A DNA stretch of 63,005 bases, filler included, from Octopus bimaculoides (GCF_001194135.2; 6 parts of 6 records of this genome joined end to end with filler, not necessarily neighbours in it), one strand, 5' to 3'. Numbered from the whole stretch's first letter, positions 13,002 through 39,435 are shown. Notes: generated by a model from the sequence alone, not told the origin. A program made the numbers and translations.

Positions 13002-15339
13002 ATATATATATATATATATACATACGCATAAATGCTTATATTGATACATGATTATATACATATACGTATATGTGTAGGTATGTATTTATGTATCAATGAT
13101 TTTATGCTTCTTTACATGATGTATTTTATCTGTGTGTATAGAAATGTACCTATCAATGCAGGATCTGTGTTAACTCGCTGGATTATAAGTATGTATATAT
13201 GATGGAGTGTATGTATATTTGTGTATCTATATATGTGTGTGGGTGTATGTGTTTGTGTGTGTATAAATGAGCAACGATATTCACATATACATTCCAAGGA
13301 ATTTTAATGAATTCTCAACATGATAATATGATTTTCAATTAACCATTTCCACACTAGGGGGTCTCAAGTTATTTAAATATCCCCCTCTTAACTCTTCAAC
13401 CAGAAACATAAACAGAAAATATATCTCTGTGTTTTATTCATATTCGAGAATGAACGTTCAGTTTTGGAAACTTAAACTATGCTACAAAATTAGAAAACTC
13501 TTCTCTGCTGTAATTACCTTTATGTTTATTATTCTCGATACCTTCAACTTTAATGTTGTATTTTCTTTCTCTCATGGATATAAAGTCGTGTTTTGTTGTC
13601 TACGTGAATGAGAGATCTGCTTCAGATCTCGTATTATTATGCGCTATCTGATAAATGACGTTTCAATATCAGACCCTACCATGCTTTCTTACTTTCTTGG
13701 TGATCAGAGCTTTGAATGATATGTAAGCCCAACTTCAACACAGTATGGAGATTATATCACGAATTGACGGTGATGTAATTAACGAAAACATTCGAGATGA
13801 AGGTAAAATTTAGCTTCATGTATATACAGGAAAAAATAATAACCAAAACTCTACGTTCATAAGTCTTTCTTAGAATGAGAATTCGATTTTAAGGTTTAGT
13901 GCAAGTGTCAGTCGGATAAAGTGATAGAAGTTTCTTTAGTGGCTGTGCAGCCGCTATTTTTCATAATAATATCAATGGTGATAAAGAGACATAAATAATC
14001 ACTTCTAATAAAGGAAAAATCTCTGAAATTTGCCGGGAAGGGACCAGTCAAACACATCGACTCCAGTGTTTCACTGGTACTTAATTGCTTGACACAGAAA
14101 GGATGAAAGGCAAAGTAGACCTTGGCGGAATTTGAACTTGTTGGAACATTACGACCAACATGTTTAATATTCTGGCATCTCTGTGCCGTATAAAGAGCCA
14201 TAAATAATAATAATAAGAAGAATATAAGGGATAGGCAGATAGATAGACAAACATATAGGTAATTAGGTAATCAAACCGCCAAATAATTTAATAGACTAAA
14301 TGATGGACAAACAGATAGATAGATAGACAGAAAGGTAGATAAAGAGACAGACAGACATATATATAGACAGACATATAGACAGACAGGCAGACATACAGAC
14401 AGATAGATAAATAAATAGATAGATAGATAGATATATATATATATATATATATATAGATAGATAGATAGATAGATAGACAGATAGATATAATGGAGAGTTG
14501 TATCGCAACTTGCCGAGGCATTTGCGAAATTCCAAATGCCCAGAAAATCAGATGAAATGAGTTTCTTTTTCCATTCATTTGACCGTAGCTGTGCTTGGGC
14601 GATGCCTGAATATAGACATACATAAGTAAATATACAAATATGTACATACATACATACATACATACATAATATGTACACACATAAACATATACATATATTT
14701 GTGTATAATATTGACTATATTGATACATATGCATATGTGTATATATACATACACTTACACAGACACAGAGACACACATACACACATATATATATCACCAA
14801 ATACAGCGAGAGAAAACAGTGTTACTCATTCCATATTTATAAATATAGCAGGCAGGAACACACTGAAATAACACGCAAGAAAAAAAGCTACATCAAAAAC
14901 AGAGTACTTCAAGTTAAGCCGGTAAACCGTTGTCAACAGATTGATATCGGAGCGAGTATTGACTAACATCAGTCAACAAAATCAAAAACTAGATCGCTCC
15001 TCCCCGCTTGGTCAAAAATGTCATCACTATGATCAGCGCCGCCTTCTCCATCATATGAATGATATTACCAATTTAACACCGTTAACTATCAACCGATTTA
15101 AACATGACAAACACGAAGAACTGTAACAAAAAGACAAACAACGATAACCAAACAAAAATCAGTGAAAAATATGACGAACAAAATGATGATATAAAGACGG
15201 CAAGACTATCATCAAAAGGCAGCCATCTTTGTATATAACGTTGATATCTCTGTCGCTCTTATTGTGAAGTAAAAACTTTTTGATAATCTGCTGACATTTC
15301 AAACAGAGCCGAGACAGGCCGCGCTTATCTTGCTGGCAT

Positions 15340-17680: not shown

Positions 17681-17979
17681 ATATCTATGACATCATTGTC
17701 ACCGTTAACACCACCACAACCACTACCATCATCACCACCACCACCACCATCACCACCATCACCACTACCACCACCAACACCACTAACACCACCAACACCA
17801 CCAACACCACAACCACCACCATCACCATCACCACCACCACCACCACCACTACCATATATAGTAGTGGTAGTGGTGATGGTGGAGTAGGAAAAGAGAAAGA
17901 AGAAGAAAGAAAAGGAAAAGACGGGAGTGGTATGACTACTAGACTGTTCGTGAAATCTTCTTTGATGGCCAAGTGACCT

Positions 17980-19465
17980 AAAAGTGACCTGCTGTGGTTG
18001 TAGCAGTAGTGATTGGAATTGTTCTGAATAAATTCATGGATAGTGGCTGTTCTGAATCTATCGTTTTTAATATTTGCGTGGGTATTATTCTCAGATCCTT
18101 GTAGTAGTGTGTCATCTGTGATGGAAGCATTCAAAAGGAGTTTATATTTTGCGATGAAATATGATTCTTTGCTAATGCGCTGGTTATAGGTTGCATTGTC
18201 CCTAAATTTATTGAGGGGAAAAATTCTGAAGTTGGGTTGTTCGTTAGTGACGCAAATGTCGATGTGTTCGCTTAATGCTATTTTTCTGTATTCCCGAATT
18301 TTAATCTGGGATCTGTGTACGGTCATCCTTGGACGTAGACTATTTTTGGTTTGGCCTGTGTATTGCTCTCGATACCCTGAGCAAGTTAATACATATATTA
18401 AGTTTTCCGAAGCACATGTGAAGTTGTTTTTCACTATAAAACGTTGACCTTGTTTGAAGGCGAACGCCAATCCCTCAATTAGTTTGACGCATATACCACA
18501 ATTAGGTCCTCCGCATTTTTTTACTGACGGTTTCGATGTTGTTGACGAGTGTACTTGGGCTTGTGTTAGAAGACTTTTCATTGACTTGGGTTGTCTTTTG
18601 CTTTTTATGATGGTGTACGTTTGGAGGATTTGATTCATTCTGTGATCCCTTTTTAGTAAAGGAATGCTCTGGAGGATGGTGTCGAAGGCTTCATTGTTTA
18701 GGGGGTTGTGTGTGGATATGTATGGTATGGCTTTTGGTTATAAACCCTCTTTAGTTTGGGATGTCTGAGTTCGTGGCTGTTGAGTTGTATGGCAAGTTGG
18801 AAACCTATATCAATTAGAGATGGCGGGTAGTCCCTGCTGATGTGTGTATCCATTAGCTCATGTAGTCGTGTGTCCCTGGTACTTGTATCAGATACTATAG
18901 TACAAATCCTTTTTGCTAGGGTGAAAAGGATATTCATTCTAGTGTCTAGGGTGGTATGAGTTGAACGGTAGATATTGCTTGGAGTTCGTGGGCTTATAGT
19001 ATATGTTTGTTTCTATTTTGTTGTTGGATTTCTTAATGAGGATGTCGAGGAATGGAAGCTGTTAATGGCTATATTCCATCGTAAATTGAATGTTTATGTC
19101 AAGTTCAATTAGAAGTGCATGAAATTCTTTAAGTCTCTCTATGCTTTCATGCCAAAGAATGAAACAATCATCTAGATACCTCTTCCAGTTATTTTCTATG
19201 TAGAGAGAGAATGGGTTACCGTATTTTTCTAGTACTTAACGATAAAGATTGATTTCTAGATATCCCATGACAAGATTAGCAAAGGAGGAGGCCATTCTCG
19301 TACCCATCGCAGTCCCCGATTTTTGTCGATAGAAGCTGTCTTTGAAGACGAAGAAGTTATTCTCCAAAATGAATTTTAGCCCTTCTATTACGAATTCTTT
19401 TTTGATGTGGTGTGGGAGTTCATTAGAGTAATTCTCTAGCCAGAATTGGATTGCCTCTATTCCTA
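17980..19465 (-). mobile_element. Penelope-like retroelement, 5'-truncated, RT plus GIY-YIG endonuclease, disrupted
   Basis: Minus strand reads FYRQKSGTAMGTRMA...WKRYLDDCFILW...LPFLDILI (RT) and CGGPNCGIC...NLIYVLTCSGYREQYTGQT...RMTVH (GIY-YIG); stops and frameshifts. Confidence 0.92.
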
Positions 19466-26410: not shown

Positions 26411-26460
26411 TTAGATGAGAACAACACAGATGTTACTCAGAAATAGATTACAATATAAAA
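26411..26460 (+). promoter_or_regulatory. Promoter of peptide gene copy 1: conserved block ttagatgagaacaacaCAGATGttactcag plus TATA box TATAAAA (26454-26460)
   Basis: Same block and TATA spacing recur at 33243-33292 and 38458-38507. Confidence 0.75.
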
Positions 26461-26597
26461 GGACTTATTCTTCTTCTTAACAAACAGCACCTCACAGACA
26501 TTCCAGTAAGTTTTGCTTTTAGTGTCTTCGAATGAAATTTCTTATTTTTTCTCTCGACTTGATAATTAGGACTTCATGTTCAAACATTCTAACAAGA

Positions 26598-26646
<49 letters not shown>

Positions 26647-26737
26647 GCTAATTAGTTAGATATCTTGCAGGCTGGCTCGTTGAATAAGTATCTATCTATC
26701 TTGCTTTCTAGCTACCGTTTATTTTTGTTTTTCAGAC

Positions 26738-27756
26738 ATGAAGCTCGTCCTTTTGTTTTTAGTGCTGCTTCCCATCGTCTTCGCTGCCAGCTTCTATGAT
26801 GAGGAGGTCGACAAAAGGTTTTCGCGTAAGTAAAAACAAAATCTCCTGGAAATGTTTTGTCCACAAGAATTAGAGATATGATAGCATGATGTTGTTGTCG
26901 TTGTTGTTGTTGTTTAACTCCAAATCAATATCAGTCGAGCTGATTTGCTAGTTATCAAAGATATCTACAAATCAATGGCCTTTACAAATTGTCTGCCACA
27001 CCAGACAAAATGCTTAGCGGAAATTCTTCCGACTTTACGGTCAGAGTTCATATTCAATTGCGGTGCACTTTGCTTGTCATTCTTTCGAGGACGATAAAAT
27101 ATGTAGCAGTTGTTCAAGGATGTTGATTTATTCGATTTTTCTTTCCTTTCAAATAATCCCTTGCTTCGTAGCAAAATTAGAAATAATTATTCTTCTTGTC
27201 ACTAATATCTTATAAATCACCAAATTCAATTCCGTTTCATGTTACGTTGCTTATAACGTTGAGAAAGGCATGATTGTCATTCAATTTCATAAACTCTCCC
27301 ACAGTAAATAACATCATGATTTTCTCGATATTATAATTAAACTTCTCAGTTACACACTAAATTAAACATGAACGACAAAGTACGTTGTGGTATTTAGGTA
27401 CGTCTTTTTAAGTTATGCAGGCTTTCAATATTTTAAATGTCGCAGCTTCTGGTTCTGTTTTTCGTCTCTCGGATGTTAAGCTGTCTCAAAAATGTAAATA
27501 TTCATAGTGATTACGCTAAAAATATGCGTGGAGTCCATGTGATTATATTAAAATTCAACATTTCAAACATCATTATTCAATATTTGTTCTAATTTATTTT
27601 ACAGTCAGCGATCTAATTCAACACGTCAAAAATCTGGACCTGAGTGGTGGGTGTGTACAAGCTTGTGAAGATAACGTGAAACAGTTCTGGACGTTCATGT
27701 GCGAATTAGCCTGTAAAACGTAAGTTACTTCATGACATATACACAAACGCACATAC

Positions 27757-27787
<31 letters not shown>

Positions 27788-28036
27788 AAGAAAGAGAGGA
27801 GTTACGGAGGGAATGAGGATGAGAGAGAGATTCACAGACAAACAAGTACAGAGAGAGAAGCAATTAGGCCGATAAATAAATTAGATATATAAAATACAAC
27901 AGTTTGGATATGAAATACAAAATATGTATATGTGTATACATGCAAAACGAGAGAAAGCAAAAAGTGGAGACTTTGTGACGATGAATATATTTAAGTATAA
28001 ATATCTTGATATTCATATTAAAAGATCCAACTTATC

Positions 28037-28067
<31 letters not shown>

Positions 28068-28453
28068 CCCACGCGCGCACGACGGACTTAGATACAGTTT
28101 CTATCTACTAATATCACTCAAAACGCAGGGGTCGACTCAGGCTATAGTTGAAGTCATTTGCTCTAAGAACCGTCCAGCGGGATTGAAACCGAAACCACAT
28201 GGTTAGAAAGCGATCTTCTTAACCAGAAAGCTATAATACGTCTGTAAATGAAATATTAAGAGAAGACGTATTTTTTTCTAAATATTAAGAATCTCATTTG
28301 ATAAGATAAATTTCACGCTAAACGTTACGACAGCGGCAGCATTTTTTATTCGATAAACTATTCAAGAAATACAATATTTGGCACATTTTAGTCTAATTTC
28401 TTCTTTTTTTTTCTTTTTTTCTTTTCAGTATCTTGGGAAATAGTGGAAACTAA
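26738..28453 (+). CDS. Secreted 4-Cys prepropeptide, copy 1 (coding exons 26738-26825, 27605-27719, 28429-28453; 75 aa)
   Basis: Spliced product MKLVLLFLVLLPIVFAASFYDEEVDKR/FSLSDLIQHVKNLDLSGGCVQACEDNVKQFWTFMCELACKTILGNSGN*; all introns GT-AG with gtaag donors; phases fit (88+115+25=228 nt); non-coding exon 1 ends at 26505; AATAAA at 28504 and 28591. Confidence 0.9.
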
Positions 28454-29659
28454 CGGGAACACCACTAAAAACTCTGTATTACATAATGTTTAACATAAAA
28501 TGAAATAAACAGAATTAAACAAGCGAAAAATAATGGTGTGTTTTATTTATTCATTTAATTATTTATTTATCACTTTGTGGCTTTGATGGCAATAAATCGT
28601 TTCTTACTTGTTGAATTGTCAGTTTATTTTAATTTGATTGGGGTTATTCCCGTGAATGTCAGTCATTTGAATGCTTGAGTCATCGAGCGGATTGCCGATT
28701 GAGCCTCCAATAGCTGAGCCTCCATCACATCACTGACTCTGCTCGCACCTATGGCAGAGACGATAACATCGTTAAGCTGAATTTTAACCCATTGTGGACG
28801 GGAGAATAATTACTTTCCGAGCAAATATTGATTCTTCAACCTAATCTAATCCTCCATAGCATTGGGCTACTTGATTGAACTCAGGAATCAGACACTAACT
28901 GTTTTTGTTCAATCTCGAAAATTGAATGGTAAGGTGAACTTTGTTCGGATTTAAACTTATAATGGAAATTACTTTAAACAAGCATTGTTATTCTTATTTA
29001 ATCCCAGAACAACCTTGAGGTAGCAGACCTCTAACCAAAAGCATTGAACAGTAACTAGTAACTACTTCTATTTTCGAGTCATCTTGGTTTACGCTAGCCA
29101 ATATATTCTTCGGAATGGTTTCAGTTCTATGTTGGGATGTCATTCAGCGAATGATCCTCACTTTTCTACCCACAGAGCTATTGCGCATAAGGACAAAGTA
29201 TTTACACCTGCCTATACATATATGTAATATTGCTCAAACACTTATACGTATATATACTACAATACAGTGTAACATCGAAATAAAAATCTCTTAACGCTCT
29301 AGGAACTTAGTGATCGAAATAATTACCTAGAATGTAAAAGTTTAAATCACCCTAATTATTTTATTTCAGCATTTAGTAAGTAGGAGGGGATTTAAAATCA
29401 GTGTCAACCACTGTTGAAATCCCAATAAGGGTCTGAAACCAATTCAATCGATTCCTATTCTATCTTCGACGATGATGTGTATAAACACAAAGTATTTGTA
29501 CAAATGTTCGTACTTATATAGAGTTGGCCAGATATAAATAATTTTATACTACAGTTAAATTGTATAAAACAACTTTTATCGCGAGTTAGATATTTGATTT
29601 TTGATTTTGTCTGGTTCTTATAGGTAGGAGGAGATTTAAAAACAGTGAAATATCAACAC

Positions 29660-30189: not shown

Positions 30190-31330
30190 TACTGAATAAC
30201 TTTGATATTAATAATACCGGATATATAGGTGAAGAACTTCAGTTCGCGAAGAAATCTATCAAAGAAGATAAATCTTCGTGCCCAGTTGCTTCCGAATTTC
30301 TGAAATGATGCAATTTCAATAAAATCCTGTTTTACTTTGCAATCAAACTATTGGGAGAGAACTTGAAGCCAAAGCCATTCTCAGAGTTCGACCTGCTCCC
30401 TATTCCAAAATTGGAAGACCTCAGCAATACCAAGAATTATAGAGACATTACGTTATCTTCAATAGTAGCCAATTCATCAAAATCCTGAAAGCGTTTGATA
30501 TGCCTCCAAATCTTCTCAATCCAATAGTTTACGAAGATACAAATGCAACAATTATAACACCTGATGGAGAGACAGGTTTCTGTGAATTAACAGCAAGACT
30601 ACTCCACTTACACAATACTATACACTTACACTATATCTATTTGTTCTGGTACTACACTATGTGACGTGCAAGATCTTGGAAGAAAAAGAGGAGGAACTGG
30701 GGTTTAAATTAGAAACAAGGAGAAACAGGCGAGTTACAGCAAAGATAATTACAGATGTTTGCAGACGATATTGCTCTTATCTCTGAAGAAATACATCGGG
30801 CACAGGAAGTGCTCCACGGACTAAACCATGAAGTTACAAAGGCTGTCTTGTACTGCAACTCAGATAATACTGAATACAAGACATTCAATCAAGATCACAA
30901 GCAACCAAATCGCCTCTTTGCAAGACACGGTAAAGAACTTAAAGAAGTTACTGGCTTCAATACATTGGTGCTTGAATGGAAGGTAGGGAAAACGACTTTG
31001 CTGTTCGGAAAACACTTTCTTGGAGAGCCTGTCGCAAACTGCATAAAATTTGAAGTTCTAAGGTGGCAATAAACTGAAAATTAGGTCGTCGGTGTCCACG
31101 GTGGAGTTAGTTTTGTTATACGATGTTGAAACTTGGACCCTCACCAAAAAAAGCTTGAAAAATAAAAAGACAATTTTTATACAAGGATGTTAAGAATGGC
31201 CCTGAATGTTATATGTTCATTCAATGGCTTTGAATGTTACATATTCATTTAACCAACGAATATCTTTTCTCAAAATCTATCCAAAGTGACTGAGAACATT
31301 CAGCAGAAAATAATTAGAGTTGGTGGTTAT
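30190..31330 (+). mobile_element. Non-LTR retrotransposon (RTE-like) RT relic
   Basis: FADDIALISEEIHRAQEVL...KELKEV..F..L; further homologous 3' piece at about 32540-32820. Confidence 0.75.
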
Positions 31331-33242: not shown

Positions 33243-33337
33243 TTAGATGAGAACAACACAGATGTTACTCAGCCATAAATAACTGTATAAAATGCCTAAG
33301 TCTATCTTTTAACACACCACAGCTCATACACAATCCA
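33243..33337 (+). promoter_or_regulatory. Promoter and non-coding exon 1 of peptide gene copy 2
   Basis: CAGATG 33259-33264, TATAAAA 33286-33292, donor cca|gtaag at 33337/8, intron 1 with (CT)n as in copy 1. Confidence 0.75.
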
Positions 33338-34633
33338 GTAAGTTTTGTTTCTTTAGTGCATTGGAATGAATTTTGCTATTTCTTCTCTCCGTCTCATAAT
33401 TAGGACTCCATATTCAAATATTCTAACAAGAAATTTTCTCTCTCTCTCTCTCTCTCTCTNNNNNNNNNNNNNNNNNNNNNNNNNNNNNNNNNNNNNNNNN
33501 NNNNNNNNNNNNNNNNNNNNNNNNNNNNNNNNNNNNNNNNNNNNNNNNNNNNNNNNNNNNNNNNNNNNNNNNNNNNNNNNNNNNNNNNNNNNNNNNNNNN
33601 NNNNNNNNNNNNNNNNNNNNNNNNNNNNNNNNNNNNNNNNNNNNNNNNNNNNNNNNNNNNNNNNNNNNNNNNNNNNNNNNNNNNNNNNNNNNNNNNNNNN
33701 NNNNNNNNNNNNNNNNNNNNNNNNNNNNNNNNNNNNNNNNNNNNNNNNNNNNNNNNNNNNNNNNNNNNNNNNNNNNNNNNNNNNNNNNNNNNNNNNNNNN
33801 NNNNNNNNNNNNNNNNNNNNNNNNNNNNNNNNNNNNNNNNNNNNNNNNNNNNNNNNNNNNNNNNNNNNNNNNNNNNNNNNNNNNNNNNNNNNNNNNNNNN
33901 NNNNNNNNNNNNNNNNNNNNNNNNNNNNNNNNNNNNNNNNNNNNNNNNNNNNNNNNNNNNNNNNNNNNNNNNNNNNNNNNNNNNNNNNNNNNNNNNNNNN
34001 NNNNNNNNNNNNNNNNNNNNNNNNNNNNNNNNNNNNNNNNNNNNNNNNNNNNNNNCATGTTACGTTGCTTATAACGTTGAGAAAGGCATGATTGTCATTC
34101 AATTTCATAAACTCTCCCACAGTAAATAACATCATGATTTTCTCGATATTATAATTAAACTTCTCAGTTACACACTAAATTAAACATGAATGACAAAGTA
34201 CGTTGTGGTTCCCTCAAATTATGGTTTGTTTCGTACCATAATTGGTACTGATTATTCTGTTTGTCATTACAAAGATTGTAAATCACCAATATTTCGTATC
34301 ATCAATTGTAAATTCAATGGCATTTCTTACCACCTTATTTATGACGTTAAGAAAAGTCTGTATGCCATACAATCTCATAAACTTTTCCACAATAAATATC
34401 AACATTATTTCTAATTAAACTTTTCAATCATGAATGACAAAGTACGTTGTAGTATTTAGTTGCGTCTTTCTAAGCTCTGTTGGCCTTTAATATTTTCAAT
34501 ACCGTATGTTTCGGTTCTGTTTTTCGTCTCTCCGATTTCATTCTCTCTCAAAACTGAGTGGACGACTTGCAATTATGCTTGATTTAAAATTGCAAACATC
34601 GTTATTCAATATTGGTTTAAATTTGTTTTACAG

Positions 34634-34815
34634 TTGGCGAACTGGTTGATCACGTTCGAAAACTGGATCTGAGTTCTGGCTGTGTGCAAGCTTGTGAAGA
34701 CAACGTTAAAGATTTCTGGACATTCATGTGCGGCCTAGCCTGTCAAGTGTAAGTTACTCGTAATGTACACACACGCGCGCACGCGTACGAGCGGGGACAC
34801 AAACACACAGACACA

Positions 34816-34869
<54 letters not shown>

Positions 34870-36237
34870 NNNNNNNNNNNNNNNNNNNNNNNNNNNNNNN
34901 NNNNNNNNNNNNNNNNNNNNNNNNNNNNNNNNNNNNNNNNNNNNNNNNNNNNNNNNNNNNNNNNNNNNNNNNNNNNNNNNNNNNNNNNNNNNNNNNNNNN
35001 NNNNNNNNNNNNNNNNNNNNNNNNNNNNNNNNNNNNNNNNNNNNNNNNNNNNNNNNNNNNNNNNNNNNNNNNNNNNNNNNNNNNNNNNNNNNNNNNNNNN
35101 NNNNNNNNNNNNNNNNNNNNNNNNNNNNNNNNNNNNNNNNNNNNNNNNNNNNNNNNNNNNNNNNNNNNNNNNNNNNNNNNNNNNNNNNNNNNNNNNNNNN
35201 NNNNNNNNNNNNNNNNNNNNNNNNNNNNNNNNNNNNNNNNNNNNNNNNNNNNNNNNNNNNNNNNNNNNNNNNNNNNNNNNNNNNNNNNNNNNNNNNNNNN
35301 NNNNNNNNNNNNNNNNNNNNNNNNNNNNNNNNNNNNNNNNNNNNNNNNNNNNNNNNNNNNNNNNNNNNNNNNNNNNNNNNNNNNNNNNNNNNNNNNNNNN
35401 NNNNNNNNNNNNNNNNNNNNNNNNNNNNNNNNNNNNNNNNNNNNNNNNNNNNNNNTTAGGGAAAAGAACCAAGGTTCATGAACTCATCGATGAAAATCCA
35501 CTGTCACATATAGAAAAATTAACAATTTTATTTATTGTGCTTTTACTTATTCATTTTTCTATATGCGACAGTGTATTTTCATCGATGAGTTCATGAACCT
35601 TGGTTCTTTTCCCTAACACTATATATATATATATATTTATATAAATATGTAAAACATATATACAAAAAATTTTTTAATTCATTAGAAATTTAAGCTATAA
35701 ATTATCCAACTCATAGGATTAAGAAATAAATAAAAAACATATTATCTAATGAATACTTATATTAATTTATTAAACTAGAATAAATATATCTAAATCTAAA
35801 AATAACACTGGAAGTAATTTACCTAAAAAAAACAAAACTAACATAACATAATGGCAATGTAGAAATCAAAAGACAAATCAGAAAAAAAAACTTAGTTAAA
35901 TAGTAAATACAAAGGGTGAAATTATAATTATCAAACTCTCAATAACCGGTTAATCGAATTGAACAAAATAAAACATCCTTAAAAGACCTACTTATTAAAT
36001 TTTTTTAAACACACATTTATTCTTCTTTCCGATTTTGAATCCTCTTTCCGATTTTGAATTTAACAGCTTTCTTCTAGAAAGTAAAATCAAAAATAATGCT
36101 TCAGCAGAAAGATAATAATGCTTCAGAAGAACTTATTACCATTCTTATAAGCCGGAACCGTTCCTAAAATGTTGCATTCAATAAAGAACGTTTTATTATG
36201 ATCTTAAAGATTCCAGATGAAATTACTAAGATTGGTA

Positions 36238-36276
<39 letters not shown>

Positions 36277-36590
36277 GGTCAAATCAGGGTTCTAGTTGAA
36301 GACACTGGCCCAAAGTGCTGTACAGTGGGACTGAAACCTAAACCACTTAGTTACAAAATGACTTTCTTAACCACACAACCATACATATATCTGTGAACAA
36401 AATATTAACGGAAAACTTATTTGTATCCATTCTTTAAGAATTTCAATTTTGAAGATAAATTTCACGATAAATGTTACAAGCGACGATTATAATTCGATAA
36501 ACTATGTAAGAAATATGATATTTGGTGAATTTTAGTCTAAATTCTTCCTTTTCTTTCATTCTTTTCAGTATCTTGGGCAAGCCAAACTGA
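34634..36590 (+). CDS. Secreted 4-Cys peptide, copy 2 (exons 34634-34748 and 36569-36590; exon 2 presumably in gap 33460-34055)
   Basis: xGELVDHVRKLDLSSGCVQACEDNVKDFWTFMCGLACQVILGKPN*; same 115-nt exon length and phases as copy 1, intact splice sites. Confidence 0.85.
35456..35616. mobile_element. Palindromic MITE in intron 3 of copy 2
   Basis: ttagggaaaagaaccaaggttcatgaactcatcgatgaaaat ... attttcatcgatgagttcatgaaccttggttcttttccctaa. Confidence 0.8.
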
Positions 36591-37806
36591 AACTATCGGT
36601 GACAACATCACTCGGAATTTAGCTATTCATAATGTCCAACATTAGATGAAATAAACTTTATTAAACAAACAAAACCATTTATCTACTTATTTCGCTGGGT
36701 TTTAGATGGCAATAAATCGTTTGTTACTTGTTGATTTGTCAGTTTTTTTTCTATTTCTTATTTACTTCCGTAAATGTCAGTTAAGTGTATGAGCTTTTTA
36801 ACGGACTGCCGATTGGGTTTCCAATAGTTCGCATCATGTCACCGATTCTGCTCATTAAGCTTAATTTTATAACTATGTGGAGAGGTGAGGAATTATTTTC
36901 AGATGAAATATTGATTCTTCAACCTAATCTACCGCCCCGCACCCCATAACATTAGGTAATTAGATTGAACCCAGGAATCAGATGCTAATTTGTTTTGATC
37001 AGCCTCGAAGAACGAAAGATAAAGTGGGTTTCGGCCGGATTCGAACTTACAATGTAAACAACCGTAAATAAATACAACCAGCATCTTCTGTACGAACAAA
37101 ATAAGTATTGGTGTTCTTCTTTAGCTCGAGAACCGGCTTCATGGAACAGACCTCCGATCAAAAACATTGTATCTTCGTCTTTTTTATGACGAATAACTTA
37201 GTAATCGAAATAATTATCTAGAATGTAAAATAGTAAAATTGCCCTAATTATTTTACTTAAGCATTTAGTAGGTAGAAGGCGATTTACAAACAGTGTTAAC
37301 GTGAATACTTAAATCGATTCTTCAGTTATTGCTGATATCCCAATATAGGACTGAAACCAGTTCAATCGAATCCAGTTGTTCTATACACGTCAATAATGTG
37401 TATAAACACAAAATATTTGTACACACGTTGGTACTTATATAGAGTTGGCTGGACATAAATAATTATATACTATAAATGGTACTGTTAAAGAGCCCCTTCA
37501 GGTCATAAATGACCATAGGATTGCACCTAGAATGTTACCCTTCGGCGCACAAGTCCGAGCAAGGTTGTTTATGTAAGACAAGCATTCTTCACCACGCCAC
37601 TAATGTTATCCAAGGGAAAGGCAAATGTCGATACAGCTTGGCACCTGTGACGTCGCAACTCATTTCTACAGCTGAATAAACAGGAGCAACGTGAAATAAA
37701 GTGTCTTGCTCTATAACACAACACACTGCCCAGTCTGGAAATCGAACTCACTACCTCATAATTGTGAGCTTGAGGCTCTAGCGACTGAGGTCAGATATCG
37801 GATGTA

Positions 37807-38106: not shown

Positions 38107-38457
38107 TAGATGACTCAGATTTCTGATTCGTAGAGAAGGATGAGGTAACAACTGCCCTGTACATAAAGTACTTCAGGTCAGACCGGTTGACTTTGTCTCG
38201 GTTTTGAAAATCTCAAATCTCATTTCAAGCCACCCGGGAGAAACTCCTACACGCATGCACGAGCGCGTACACACACAAACGAAAAACAAAAACGAATTTA
38301 TTCAATAATTCTTTAAAGTTGCCTAACCAAACATTTATGGCTCGCAGCGTAATCACTAGTATCAAAATAGTCATATATATTTTTTCTCAACACATATCTT
38401 TCAATTGATTAGCGCAGCGTTTCCGTTTCGTTTCAATCAATTTCATTGGTTTCTATT

Positions 38458-38552
38458 TTAGATGAGAACGACTCAGATGTTACTTAGTCATAGGTTACTA
38501 TATAAAATACCTTAGTACTTTTTTTAATACACCACGTCTCATATACAATTCA
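38458..38552 (+). promoter_or_regulatory. Promoter and non-coding exon 1 of a third peptide-gene copy; coding exons not visible
   Basis: CAGATG 38474-38479, TATAAAA 38501-38507, donor tca|gtaag at 38552/3, intron-1 homology to about 38645; upstream flank homologous to 32980-33200. Confidence 0.7.
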
Positions 38553-39435
38553 GTAAGTGTTGTTTCTTAATGCATTGGTATGTATTTTCTTATTTCTTCT
38601 CCAAAATCTAATTAGGACTTCATATTCAAATTCTGTTACAAGAGTCTGTCTATATCCCTATCTGTCTGTCTACTAACCTAGCAGGGCGGAAGGTCTAAGT
38701 ACGCAATGCATGCATTGCATGCCTTACTATTTTTCGTCGATAAATAAATTTTTTGTAATATATAATTGATTATTGAAAATTTTCATGAAGTGATATTGAT
38801 ATATAACTCAAGTGATATTCAAAACGAACTCATTCAATTGTATAACGGTTAGAAGTGAAGGTGTAATTCAGCCAATGATCAAAAGAAGCAGCATTTGTTG
38901 CCGTTATATTTCGTGAGACTACAGACCATCAAATAAAATCTTAACTGTCACACGTTTTCACGATTGGTTGATGAAAAGGTTAGACTCCAAGAAAGGTTTT
39001 GGGGGATAAGTCGATATCAGTAAAGGCAGAATAGCTGCATCACTGACAGAAGTTGTACATTGTTATACACATTCACTTAATTTGGTGCTCTCGCAATCAG
39101 CTTCGTGTTTAGAATTTTTTTTCTTCTGATTTTCTTTCTATATAAAATGTTCTTTAAAAATGGGCATGGTTCAATATGGTTATGATATTGCTTTCTAATG
39201 CAGCCACAAGGAATGAAGTTTGGGGTGGGGAACGGGTCTAGTCGTCTACATCGACCCCACTGCTTGACTGGTACTTAATTTACCGACCCGGAACGGATTA
39301 AAGGCAAAATCAGCCCCAGCGGAATTTGAACACAGNNNNNNNNNNNNNNNNNNNNNNNNNNNNNNNNNNNNNNNNNNNNTTAATTAATTAANNNNNNNNN
39401 NNNNNNNNNNNNNNNNNNNNNNNNNNNNNNNNNNN

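Follow-up and report, generated by a model that had tools for sequence, protein, structure and literature searches.

Does a set of exons too short for a scan of open reading frames (ORFs) make up a genuine gene, and, if so, what does its product do? The question is raised by positions 26411 to 28600 of a 63,005-nucleotide stretch of Octopus bimaculoides DNA (the window; six parts of records from assembly GCF_001194135.2 joined end to end with filler, which is included in the length). An earlier note, made from the sequence alone, had proposed that this locus encodes a secreted prepropeptide with a C-x3-C-x11-C-x3-C core, and had presented it as an unannotated candidate toxin, pheromone or defence peptide. 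The locus carries an intact, TATA-driven, four-exon gene (hereafter gene 1) whose organization is far beyond chance. It is almost certain that gene 1 is real and part of a genuine family, and very likely that its product is a secreted, processed and stapled helical peptide. The best explanation overall, to which we assign a probability of roughly 0.6, is that gene 1 is a tandem-array member of a mollusc-wide family of secreted peptides whose product serves as an exocrine helical ligand. Taken by itself, the exocrine ligand role is drawn from a paralogue and is held more tentatively, at somewhat less than even odds.

A four-exon gene for a 75-residue precursor

Gene 1 lies on the plus strand of a draft eukaryotic scaffold piece that contains seven runs of N. 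The gene is preceded by a conserved upstream element, TTAGATGAGAACAACACAGATGTTACTCAG (positions 26411–26440), whose 23-nt core recurs in the window and in Octopus vulgaris. A TATA box (TATAAAA, 26454–26460) can be read directly in the sequence and falls in a block kept in five of five aligned promoters. It is followed by a short noncoding exon 1 (26485–26505) with the donor CCA/GTAAGT, where the slash marks the splice site. We infer the transcription start, at which this exon begins, from a distance of ∼30 nt past the TATA box. The end of exon 1 and its donor, ..CAGTAAGTTTTG, are common to both family genes of the window and to three O. vulgaris genes in the promoter alignment.

The coding sequence occupies the remaining three exons. 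Exon 2 (26736–26825) opens with two bases upstream of the ATG (26738) and closes in phase 1 at a GTAAGT donor. It encodes the signal peptide (MKLVLLFLVLLPIVFA), the acidic pro-piece ASFYDEEVDKR, and the residues FS, together with the opening base of the codon that follows. Exon 3 (27605–27719), bounded by the acceptor TATTTTACAG upstream and a GTAAGT donor downstream, encodes the N-terminal helix of the mature peptide, an LDLSGG linker and the C-x3-C-x11-C-x3-C core, and ends in phase 2. The coding part of exon 4 (28429–28453) follows the acceptor TTCTTTTCAG, reads ..T ILGNSGN and terminates with TAA at 28451–28453. Both donors at the coding junctions are GTAAGT, and both acceptors consist of a pyrimidine tract followed by CAG. 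Exons 2–4 join in frame to give the 75-aa precursor MKLVLLFLVLLPIVFAASFYDEEVDKRFSLSDLIQHVKNLDLSGGCVQACEDNVKQFWTFMCELACKTILGNSGN. A likely poly(A) signal, AATAAA at 28504–28509, lies within ATGAAATAAAC, and the same ATGAAATAAAC recurs after the stop codon of a paralogue at 36646–36656; a second AATAAA can be read at 28591–28596.

This organization, with its canonical splice sites, bears out what the earlier note had assembled, namely a three-exon splice yielding this exact product, together with a TATA box, a noncoding first exon and poly(A) signals. Its description of the gene as unannotated does not stand. A search of 5.8 billion proteins returned an identical 75-aa entry from Octopus bimaculoides (UniRef/UniProt A0A0L8GVS8_OCTBM, “Uncharacterized protein”; 100% identity), and at least eight paralogues of gene 1 are likewise already deposited in public databases. 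Because this identical entry exists, the word applies only to the ORF track that was available to the earlier reader.

The gene model can be placed beyond chance because the identical UniRef model is joined by a downstream paralogue, a conserved promoter, introns shared with a clam and a skew of nucleotide differences toward synonymous sites. The paralogue (gene 2) was located by tblastn of the product against the piece, which found a third exon at 34634–34748 with 70% protein identity to gene 1. Gene 2 lies ∼6.8 kb downstream of gene 1 and corresponds to UniRef A0A0L8GWF1. From promoter to 3′ flank, the two units are ∼75%–85% identical in nucleotide sequence.

A family older than the cephalopod–bivalve split

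Relatives of the product were collected with a family hidden Markov model (HMM) built from three octopus sequences and used in an exhaustive search of 1.84 billion representatives. Eleven proteins were recovered at E ≤ 1e-3, and additional members came from word-seeded profile searches. Together, the profile searches bring the family to ∼20 proteins from O. bimaculoides, O. vulgaris, Argonauta hians, Sepia esculenta and the clam Mya arenaria. A homology search of the kind recommended in the earlier note has supplied cephalopod relatives, plus a clam, and has led to no well-characterized family.

Nine family entries are from O. bimaculoides, and six of these fall in one accession series, which suggests that they reside on a single scaffold. 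The relatives in this species are A0A0L8GWF1, GWF6 (A0A0L8GWF6, gene identifier OCBIM_22027193mg), GV61, GV66, GVL7, FGZ6, IA49 and LOC106874479. O. vulgaris contributes at least seven entries, including CAI9736012/13, CAI9736015 and CAI9726847, and Argonauta hians contributes GAB1605707 and GAB1599521. These octopod proteins are true homologues, with E values from 1e-43 to 1e-10 and with exon layout and tandem clustering in common. Their mature sequences are 33%–70% identical to the window peptide and carry variable C-terminal tails; none of them has been named or functionally assigned.

On an O. vulgaris chromosome, three family genes with the same exon layout lie within 25 kb on both strands. 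The window genes and these three genes have in common the upstream element, the TATA box, the exon-1 donor, a microsatellite in intron 1 and an acceptor two bases before the ATG. The intron 1 microsatellite occupies the same place in every copy, as (CT)n in O. bimaculoides (∼26601–26648 and 33437–33459) and as (TCTA)n in O. vulgaris.

The most distant relative is the Mya arenaria protein WAR14592.1 (hypothetical protein MAR_004697), which matches the three-sequence octopus profile at E = 6e-6. Like the octopus proteins, it has a signal peptide, the sequence EVDKRF and a C-x3-C-x11-C-x3-C core; it differs in having two extra cysteines, a 4-residue insertion and a shorter pro-piece. The Mya gene shares all three intron positions with the octopus genes, and the phases of both coding introns are identical. 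One acceptor is located just before the ATG, a phase-1 intron lies two residues after the KR, and a phase-2 intron lies one residue after the last cysteine. This gene structure, composed of a 5′UTR intron, a phase-1 intron and a phase-2 intron, is present in the window genes, in O. vulgaris, in Mya and in Sepia transcripts, and the 5′UTR intron ends only a few nucleotides before the ATG in the more distant species (2 nt in Sepia, 6 nt in Mya). Judged from these gene sequences, the sharing of introns with a clam is strong evidence of true homology and of an old, mollusc-wide family. Because both intron positions and phases are shared, the family predates the divergence of cephalopods and bivalves.

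Evidence for transcription comes from two family contigs in public RNA-seq data; the run SRR19578103, the source of one of them, represents Sepia esculenta larvae according to the literature. The contigs are 100% identical where they overlap, and both are contiguous across the exon 2/3 junction. One has the 5′UTR intron spliced and the last intron retained, and the other carries a poly(A) tail, with the last intron spliced and the 5′UTR intron retained. Therefore, a member of this family is transcribed, spliced at the predicted junctions and polyadenylated. The Sepia transcripts extend at least 613 nt upstream of the 5′UTR intron, an unusual length when set against the very short exon 1 inferred for octopus.

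One deposited paralogue, which lies outside the piece, departs from the family pattern. The model for A0A0L8GVL7 follows another reading frame in exons 3 and 4, and its cysteine core is lost. The regions comparable to this frame switch are positions 34676–34747 and 36568–36636 in the window and positions 14422–14460 and 15174–15242 in the O. vulgaris stretch. A0A0L8GVL7 is either a frameshifted pseudogene or an error of assembly or gene modelling. Among the O. bimaculoides sequences, it is also the one most similar to O. vulgaris CAI9736013.

The precursor and its predicted fold

The N-terminal segment of the precursor has the properties of a signal peptide. Residues 3–15 have a mean Kyte–Doolittle hydropathy of 3.4, and the residues V-F-A at positions −3 to −1 fit the −3/−1 rule. 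A hydrophobic N-terminal signal is conserved in all family members. Across the 11 aligned members, M1, K2, L8, P12, K26, the four cysteines and A65 are invariant; 10 of the 11 have R27, and one Argonauta sequence has KK instead. The architecture that the earlier note had read from a single sequence (signal, acidic pro-segment, KR, mature peptide) is therefore a property of the alignment, with K26 invariant and R27 nearly so.

In all cephalopod members, the first cysteine is located 19 residues past the KR, and the four cysteines are separated by gaps of 3, 11 and 3 residues. The mature peptides range from 41 to 53 aa, and every one of them carries a net charge of −1 to −4. For the window peptide, computation gives 48 aa, a pI of about 4.8 and a monoisotopic mass of 5271.46 Da with two disulfides; its computed charge of −2 and 3/11/3 spacing are those given in the earlier note. 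Outside the KR site, no basic residue is conserved family-wide.

The fold of the 48-aa mature peptide was predicted with AlphaFold2 from a 13-sequence alignment. The model has a predicted local distance difference test (pLDDT) score of 86 and a predicted template modelling (pTM) score of 0.62, and contains helices at residues 3–11, 19–26 and 29–44. The two CX3C pairs are predicted to lie on helix 2 (C19 and C23) and helix 3 (C35 and C39), forming a helix-loop-helix. Helix 1 is amphipathic, with a hydrophobic moment of 2.3. Thus, the proposal in the earlier note of an N-terminal amphipathic helix ahead of a CX3C hairpin is matched by the predicted structure. The cysteine positions obey the relation that two staples across an antiparallel hairpin require, since C19 + C39 and C23 + C35 both sum to 58. 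By this geometry and by analogy, the predicted disulfides are C1–C4 and C2–C3. The clam member has one added cysteine in helix 1 and one at the C terminus, and this extra pair fits a packing of helix 1 on the hairpin, against the end of helix 3.

Divergence differs between the exons

The rates of change in the family were examined at synonymous (dS) and nonsynonymous (dN) sites. Between the third exons of gene 1 and gene 2, there are 10 synonymous and 14 nonsynonymous differences, corresponding to a dS of 0.68, a dN of 0.18 and a dN/dS of 0.26. Relative to the neutral expectation, the skew toward synonymous change is significant by a one-sided binomial test (p = 0.013). A dN/dS value this low indicates that both window copies are constrained as coding sequence by purifying selection.

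Among the window and O. vulgaris genes, the exon encoding the signal and pro-piece evolves slowly at both kinds of sites, with dS of 0.06–0.30 and dN of 0.05–0.13. The mature exon is faster, with dN of 0.18–0.76, dS mostly of 0.38–0.82 and dN/dS of 0.26–1.26; two recently duplicated O. vulgaris copies have a dS of 0.045 in this exon. An O. vulgaris pair with a dN/dS of 2.7 was considered as a case of positive selection and rejected, since the ratio reflects 1 versus 10 changes (p = 0.7).

When each gene pair is compared exon by exon, synonymous sites have diverged several-fold less in the signal/pro exon than in the mature exon (for example, 0.17 versus 0.72). This low synonymous divergence suggests gene conversion or a constraint at the nucleotide level at the 5′ end. 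Overall, the prepro region of the family is conserved, the mature region varies more on a fixed cysteine scaffold, and the genes form tandem arrays. By analogy, and with small counts of changes, this is the pattern seen in exocrine effectors.

A paralogue in secretion and gland proteomes

Peptide-level evidence among the octopod relatives exists for one protein, GWF6. This paralogue belongs to the cluster of the window by its accession series, and its O. vulgaris orthologue adjoins another family gene by accession number. In posterior salivary gland tissue of O. vulgaris, GWF6 was identified with one unique peptide at 23.5% coverage (Q = 0, score 25.7; PMC7693380 Table S1), and its entry shares a group with a salivary-gland transcriptome ORF (PMC7693380). 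It is also listed in O. vulgaris skin mucus, with one unique peptide, two peptide-spectrum matches (PSMs) and 23% coverage (PMC10138644 Table S2), and in O. vulgaris ink, with one peptide, two PSMs and 23% coverage (PMC10142993). A coverage of 23.5% of 81 residues corresponds to 19 residues, and the sole fully tryptic 19-mer of GWF6 is ACEENVAGIGEFFCEAACK, which comprises the core between Cys 2 and Cys 4. To judge from the coverage, the observed peptide was presumably ACEENVAGIGEFFCEAACK. The GWF6 protein thus exists in several secretions or tissues, and no venom-specific role for it is shown by these data.

Likeness to stapled hairpins of other organisms

Database comparisons assign the family to no named group, as the earlier note had supposed. 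No Pfam family matches the product or any of the 11 members, including zf-Tim10_DDP (PF02953) at E ≤ 10. Weak Pfam matches of single members (E = 0.07–0.19) were rejected, and the match to “Conotoxin” (PF02950) at E = 0.19 was treated as noise. When the family profile was searched against all Protein Data Bank (PDB) chains, nothing was significant and no toxin was returned at E ≤ 10. Two chains from this search were considered as homologues and rejected: the small-TIM-like chain 7w5z_T2, which matches on one CX3C side only (E = 0.045), and the Drosophila Grindelwald ectodomain, whose E value of 0.13 is nonsignificant although four cysteines align with 3/11/3 spacing. Foldseek against the PDB gave a best E value of 7.9, which is not a strong negative given that this method is weak for peptides of ∼50 residues. 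Main-text literature searches returned no paper naming the family or its members. The gene identifier of GWF6 is absent from the supplements of Whitelaw et al. 2020, and a 2024 octopus mucus paper yielded an unrelated accession only.

The cysteine pattern itself is familiar. The motif C1-X3-C2-Xn-C3-X3-C4 with C1–C4 and C2–C3 bridges defines the plant alpha-hairpinins, and two groups of K+-channel toxins with 22–27 residues, scorpion kappa-hefutoxin/OmTx and cone-snail vil14a/flf14, have it as well (PMC7191063). The vil14a group has cysteine framework XIV, I–IV and II–III bridges and a CS-alpha/alpha fold; its precursors were unknown in 2014, and no superfamily could be assigned (PMC4278219).

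With CS-alpha/alpha toxins (kappa-KTx, OmTx, vil14a, flf14a–c and as14a–b), the octopus peptide has in common the generic cysteine motif, a predicted helix-loop-helix and secretion, and cone snails are also molluscs. In contrast to these two-helix toxins of 22–27 aa, the window peptide has 48 aa, an extra N-terminal helix, a conserved LDLSxG linker and an anionic character. The mature peptides of the family fall outside the size class of these toxins. The likeness to cone-snail and scorpion toxins that the earlier note had drawn therefore holds for the generic CX3C...CX3C motif. It does not extend to the PDB profile and Foldseek searches, which gave nothing significant, or to size, the third helix, charge and age.

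Other systems show a similar mixture of likeness and difference. The plant alpha-hairpinins (EcAMP1, Tk-AMP-X2 and trypsin-inhibitor members) likewise have the cysteine motif, the expected stapled hairpin and secretion (PMC7191063). They differ from the octopus family in that they derive from multi-module or vicilin-type precursors, are mostly basic and have no sequence similarity to it. Unlike them, the octopus family has no conserved inhibitory loop residue in its alignment. Small Tims carry two CX3C motifs on a helical hairpin with a loop of similar length. They are imported into the mitochondrial intermembrane space and have neither the cleavable endoplasmic reticulum (ER) signal nor the KR pro-site of the octopus family. 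Aplysia attractin and the Euplotes Er pheromones are small, anionic, secreted, all-helical and disulfide-stabilized, and show species-specific evolution. Unlike the octopus family, these pheromones have three disulfides and lack a twin CX3C, and no sequence relation was found. On the basis of the structural model, the octopus peptide can be filed as one that would work like a stapled helical hairpin, yet it is a member of none of these named families.

A proposed mechanism and its alternatives

We propose the following sequence of events. From its sequence and conservation, the 75-aa precursor would enter the ER by means of its 16-residue signal peptide, and a convertase of the furin/PC type would then remove the short acidic pro-piece after the conserved KR. 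The resulting 48-aa anionic peptide is predicted to fold as a three-helix mini-protein with C1–C4 and C2–C3 cross-links, its N-terminal amphipathic helix packed on the hairpin. After release into extracellular fluids or secretions, it would act as a rigid protein-binding ligand rather than as a membrane-lytic peptide. To judge from the paralogue, it would most likely be a component of a mucus-type exocrine secretion with a role in defence or chemical ecology.

Several points weigh against this proposal. Transcript and peptide support comes from relatives of gene 1. The peptidome check suggested in the earlier note succeeded for GWF6, which is listed in three O. vulgaris proteomes, and failed for the window's own product, which is absent from all three. 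Each of the GWF6 identifications rests on a single peptide. The three proteomes are also rich in intracellular and haemolymph proteins; therefore, presence in them is no proof of exocrine secretion, and a haemolymph-borne factor would give the same pattern. The proteomes are silent on processing at KR because trypsin cuts at this site anyway. Signal cleavage after Ala16, convertase cleavage after KR27 and the disulfide pairing are all predictions made from sequence, and the AlphaFold2 model of the full precursor, built with three sequences, is poor (pLDDT 53). The exact gene 1 product was not found in the gene index of the newer assemblies queried, an absence that proves nothing.

The main rival to an exocrine ligand is a hormone or pheromone, which we judge unlikely while regarding it as the most serious competitor. 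The peptide would then be an endogenous signalling ligand, that is, a hormone, a neuropeptide-like factor or a water-borne pheromone with a dedicated receptor in the animal itself or in conspecifics. The signal/pro/KR architecture is that of prohormones, the family is older than the cephalopod–bivalve split with a rigidly fixed scaffold, and a member is expressed in whole cuttlefish larvae. The anionic, helical and disulfide-rich character recalls aquatic pheromones such as attractin and those of Euplotes. Moreover, a peptide carried in haemolymph would show up alike in mucus, ink and gland, and haemocyanin is the dominant protein in the mucus list. A conserved hormone usually has one gene and a nearly invariant mature peptide. 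This family, in contrast, has many tandem paralogues whose mature identity is ∼50%–57% among the closer octopus members and ∼33% for the most divergent, and its dN/dS is often 0.6–1.0. No amidation or further dibasic processing pattern is evident in the precursor, and the family appears in no mollusc neuropeptide list within reach of text searches.

A more far-reaching possibility, to which we give only a small chance, is an ancient molluscan ligand system. Such a system might comprise a dedicated receptor for an uncatalogued hormone or water-borne pheromone, or the family might represent the endogenous ancestor of the vil14a-type CS-alpha/alpha conotoxins.

A role as venom toxin is possible and is not favoured. 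The peptide would in that case be a salivary neurotoxin aimed at prey, blocking ion channels as do the scorpion and cone-snail CS-alpha/alpha K+-channel toxins, with which it shares the generic motif C1-X3-C2-Xn-C3-X3-C4 (PMC7191063; PMC4278219). The presence of GWF6 in the posterior-salivary-gland proteome, together with the salivary-gland transcriptome ORF, would suit such a role, and toxin families typically combine tandem arrays with a conserved prepro part and a variable mature part. However, GWF6 is also found in skin mucus and ink, the gland proteome represents whole tissue with housekeeping proteins included, and a homologue exists in a filter-feeding clam. The peptides also have 41–53 aa, a third helix and an anionic charge, compared with 22–27 aa for the toxins, and the PDB searches by profile and by fold returned no solved toxin as a match. 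Furthermore, the window copies are under purifying rather than diversifying selection. On balance, we consider a venom neurotoxin a distinctly improbable outcome.

Even less probable is host defence at mucosal surfaces by a membrane-active peptide with direct antimicrobial action. Such a function would agree with the presence of GWF6 in mucus, ink and salivary gland, with the amphipathic helix 1 and the expanded gene family, and with the antimicrobial activity of plant peptides having the same cysteine motif (PMC7191063). Unlike classical cationic lytic peptides, however, every member has a charge of −1 to −4 and few basic residues, and the AlphaFold2 model seems to bury the hydrophobic residues in a compact core instead of exposing them as a lytic face.

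That the gene model is an artefact, that the locus is a dead pseudogene, or that it encodes an intracellular small-Tim-type protein with twin CX3C motifs, as might be imagined from the exons too short for an ORF scan, the nonsignificant small-TIM-like profile match (E = 0.045) and the frameshifted paralogue A0A0L8GVL7, is already largely refuted and is highly improbable: The frame, splice sites, promoter and poly(A) signal are intact, selection is purifying, the gene structure is conserved from clam to octopus, one relative is transcribed and another is detected as protein, and a hydrophobic N-terminal signal is incompatible with import into the mitochondrial intermembrane space, just as there is no zf-Tim10_DDP match.

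The tandem array in the window

The second copy of the gene is only partly visible. Its upstream element, TATAAAA box (33286–33292) and exon 1 (ending at 33337) lie at 33243–33337 on the plus strand, as established by the promoter alignment and the copies of the element. Exon 2, encoding the signal and pro-piece, must be hidden in an assembly gap at 33460–34055, where a (CT)n run meets a stretch of N. This placement follows from gene 1, in which the (CT)n run starts ∼133 nt ahead of exon 2; the run of gene 2 abuts the N stretch. Exon 3 (34634–34748, plus strand; L GELVDHVRKLDLSSGCVQACEDNVKDFWTFMCGLACQ V-) matches A0A0L8GWF1. The coding part of exon 4 (36569–36590, plus strand) reads ..V ILGKPN and ends with TGA at 36588–36590.

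The 23-nt core of the upstream element is present in three copies in the piece, where none would be expected by chance. The copy at 33245–33267 is identical to that of gene 1, and the copy at 38460–38482 has two mismatches; the core also precedes two O. vulgaris family genes. An element scan shows that the third copy is followed by TATAAAA and an exon-1 donor, TTCA/GTAAGTG (38450–38551, plus strand). Therefore, a third tandem gene starts at this point and extends past the end of the piece. In the remaining ∼800 bases of the piece, tblastn detected no family coding exon before position 39335. Going by accession order, the third gene may be A0A0L8GWF6, the paralogue detected in proteomes.

Several features near gene 2 bear on its assembly. 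Positions 34056–34209, just after the gap, are 99.4% identical over 154 bp to intron 2 of gene 1 (27238–27391), compared with ∼80% for the rest of the duplicate, and gene 2 has its own 80%-identical copy of part of this stretch at 34426–34553. This near-identity points to a misassembly at a contig edge or to local gene conversion. The signal/pro region of the deposited A0A0L8GWF1 is identical to that of gene 1, though exon 2 of gene 2 falls in the gap. The A0A0L8GWF1 model may have borrowed exon 2 of gene 1 (26736–26825), or it may rest on transcript data.

Both window copies have a (TG)n/(CA)n run in intron 3 (28040–28067 and ∼34790–34869). In gene 2, the same intron carries a 70-nt inverted repeat at 35456–35616, directly after an assembly gap that spans 34870–35455, with 94% complementarity and a 21-nt spacer. 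This repeat could be a hairpin-forming element or one resembling a miniature inverted-repeat transposable element (MITE).

Other features of the window

An ORF of 317 aa on the minus strand (17685–18638) has a weak match to a GIY-YIG nuclease (E = 6.5e-4, below the Pfam cut-off), and has a low-complexity tail that passes into a trinucleotide repeat; this ORF is probably what is left of a mobile element. A 105-aa ORF on the plus strand (30755–31072), which starts with MFADDIALISEE, resembles the region past the catalytic box of a retroelement reverse transcriptase; no Pfam family matches it. Scans of the piece for tRNAs and with Rfam found no RNA genes.

Conclusions

The advance made here is one of classification and hypothesis, concerning a gene already deposited and a product for which toxin activity is not demonstrated. 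Cephalopod genomes contain many lineage-restricted, “uncharacterized” small secreted proteins, few of which have been grouped or tied to a secretion. The present family is now defined by its scaffold, gene structure, promoter element and tandem array, to which its age, a confident fold prediction and a link of one member to skin mucus, ink and salivary gland proteomes have been added. The peptide is a larger, anionic variant of the disulfide-stapled helical hairpin, a scaffold used in peptide engineering. Studies of mucosal defence, chemical ecology or signalling in the octopus thereby gain a concrete candidate family.

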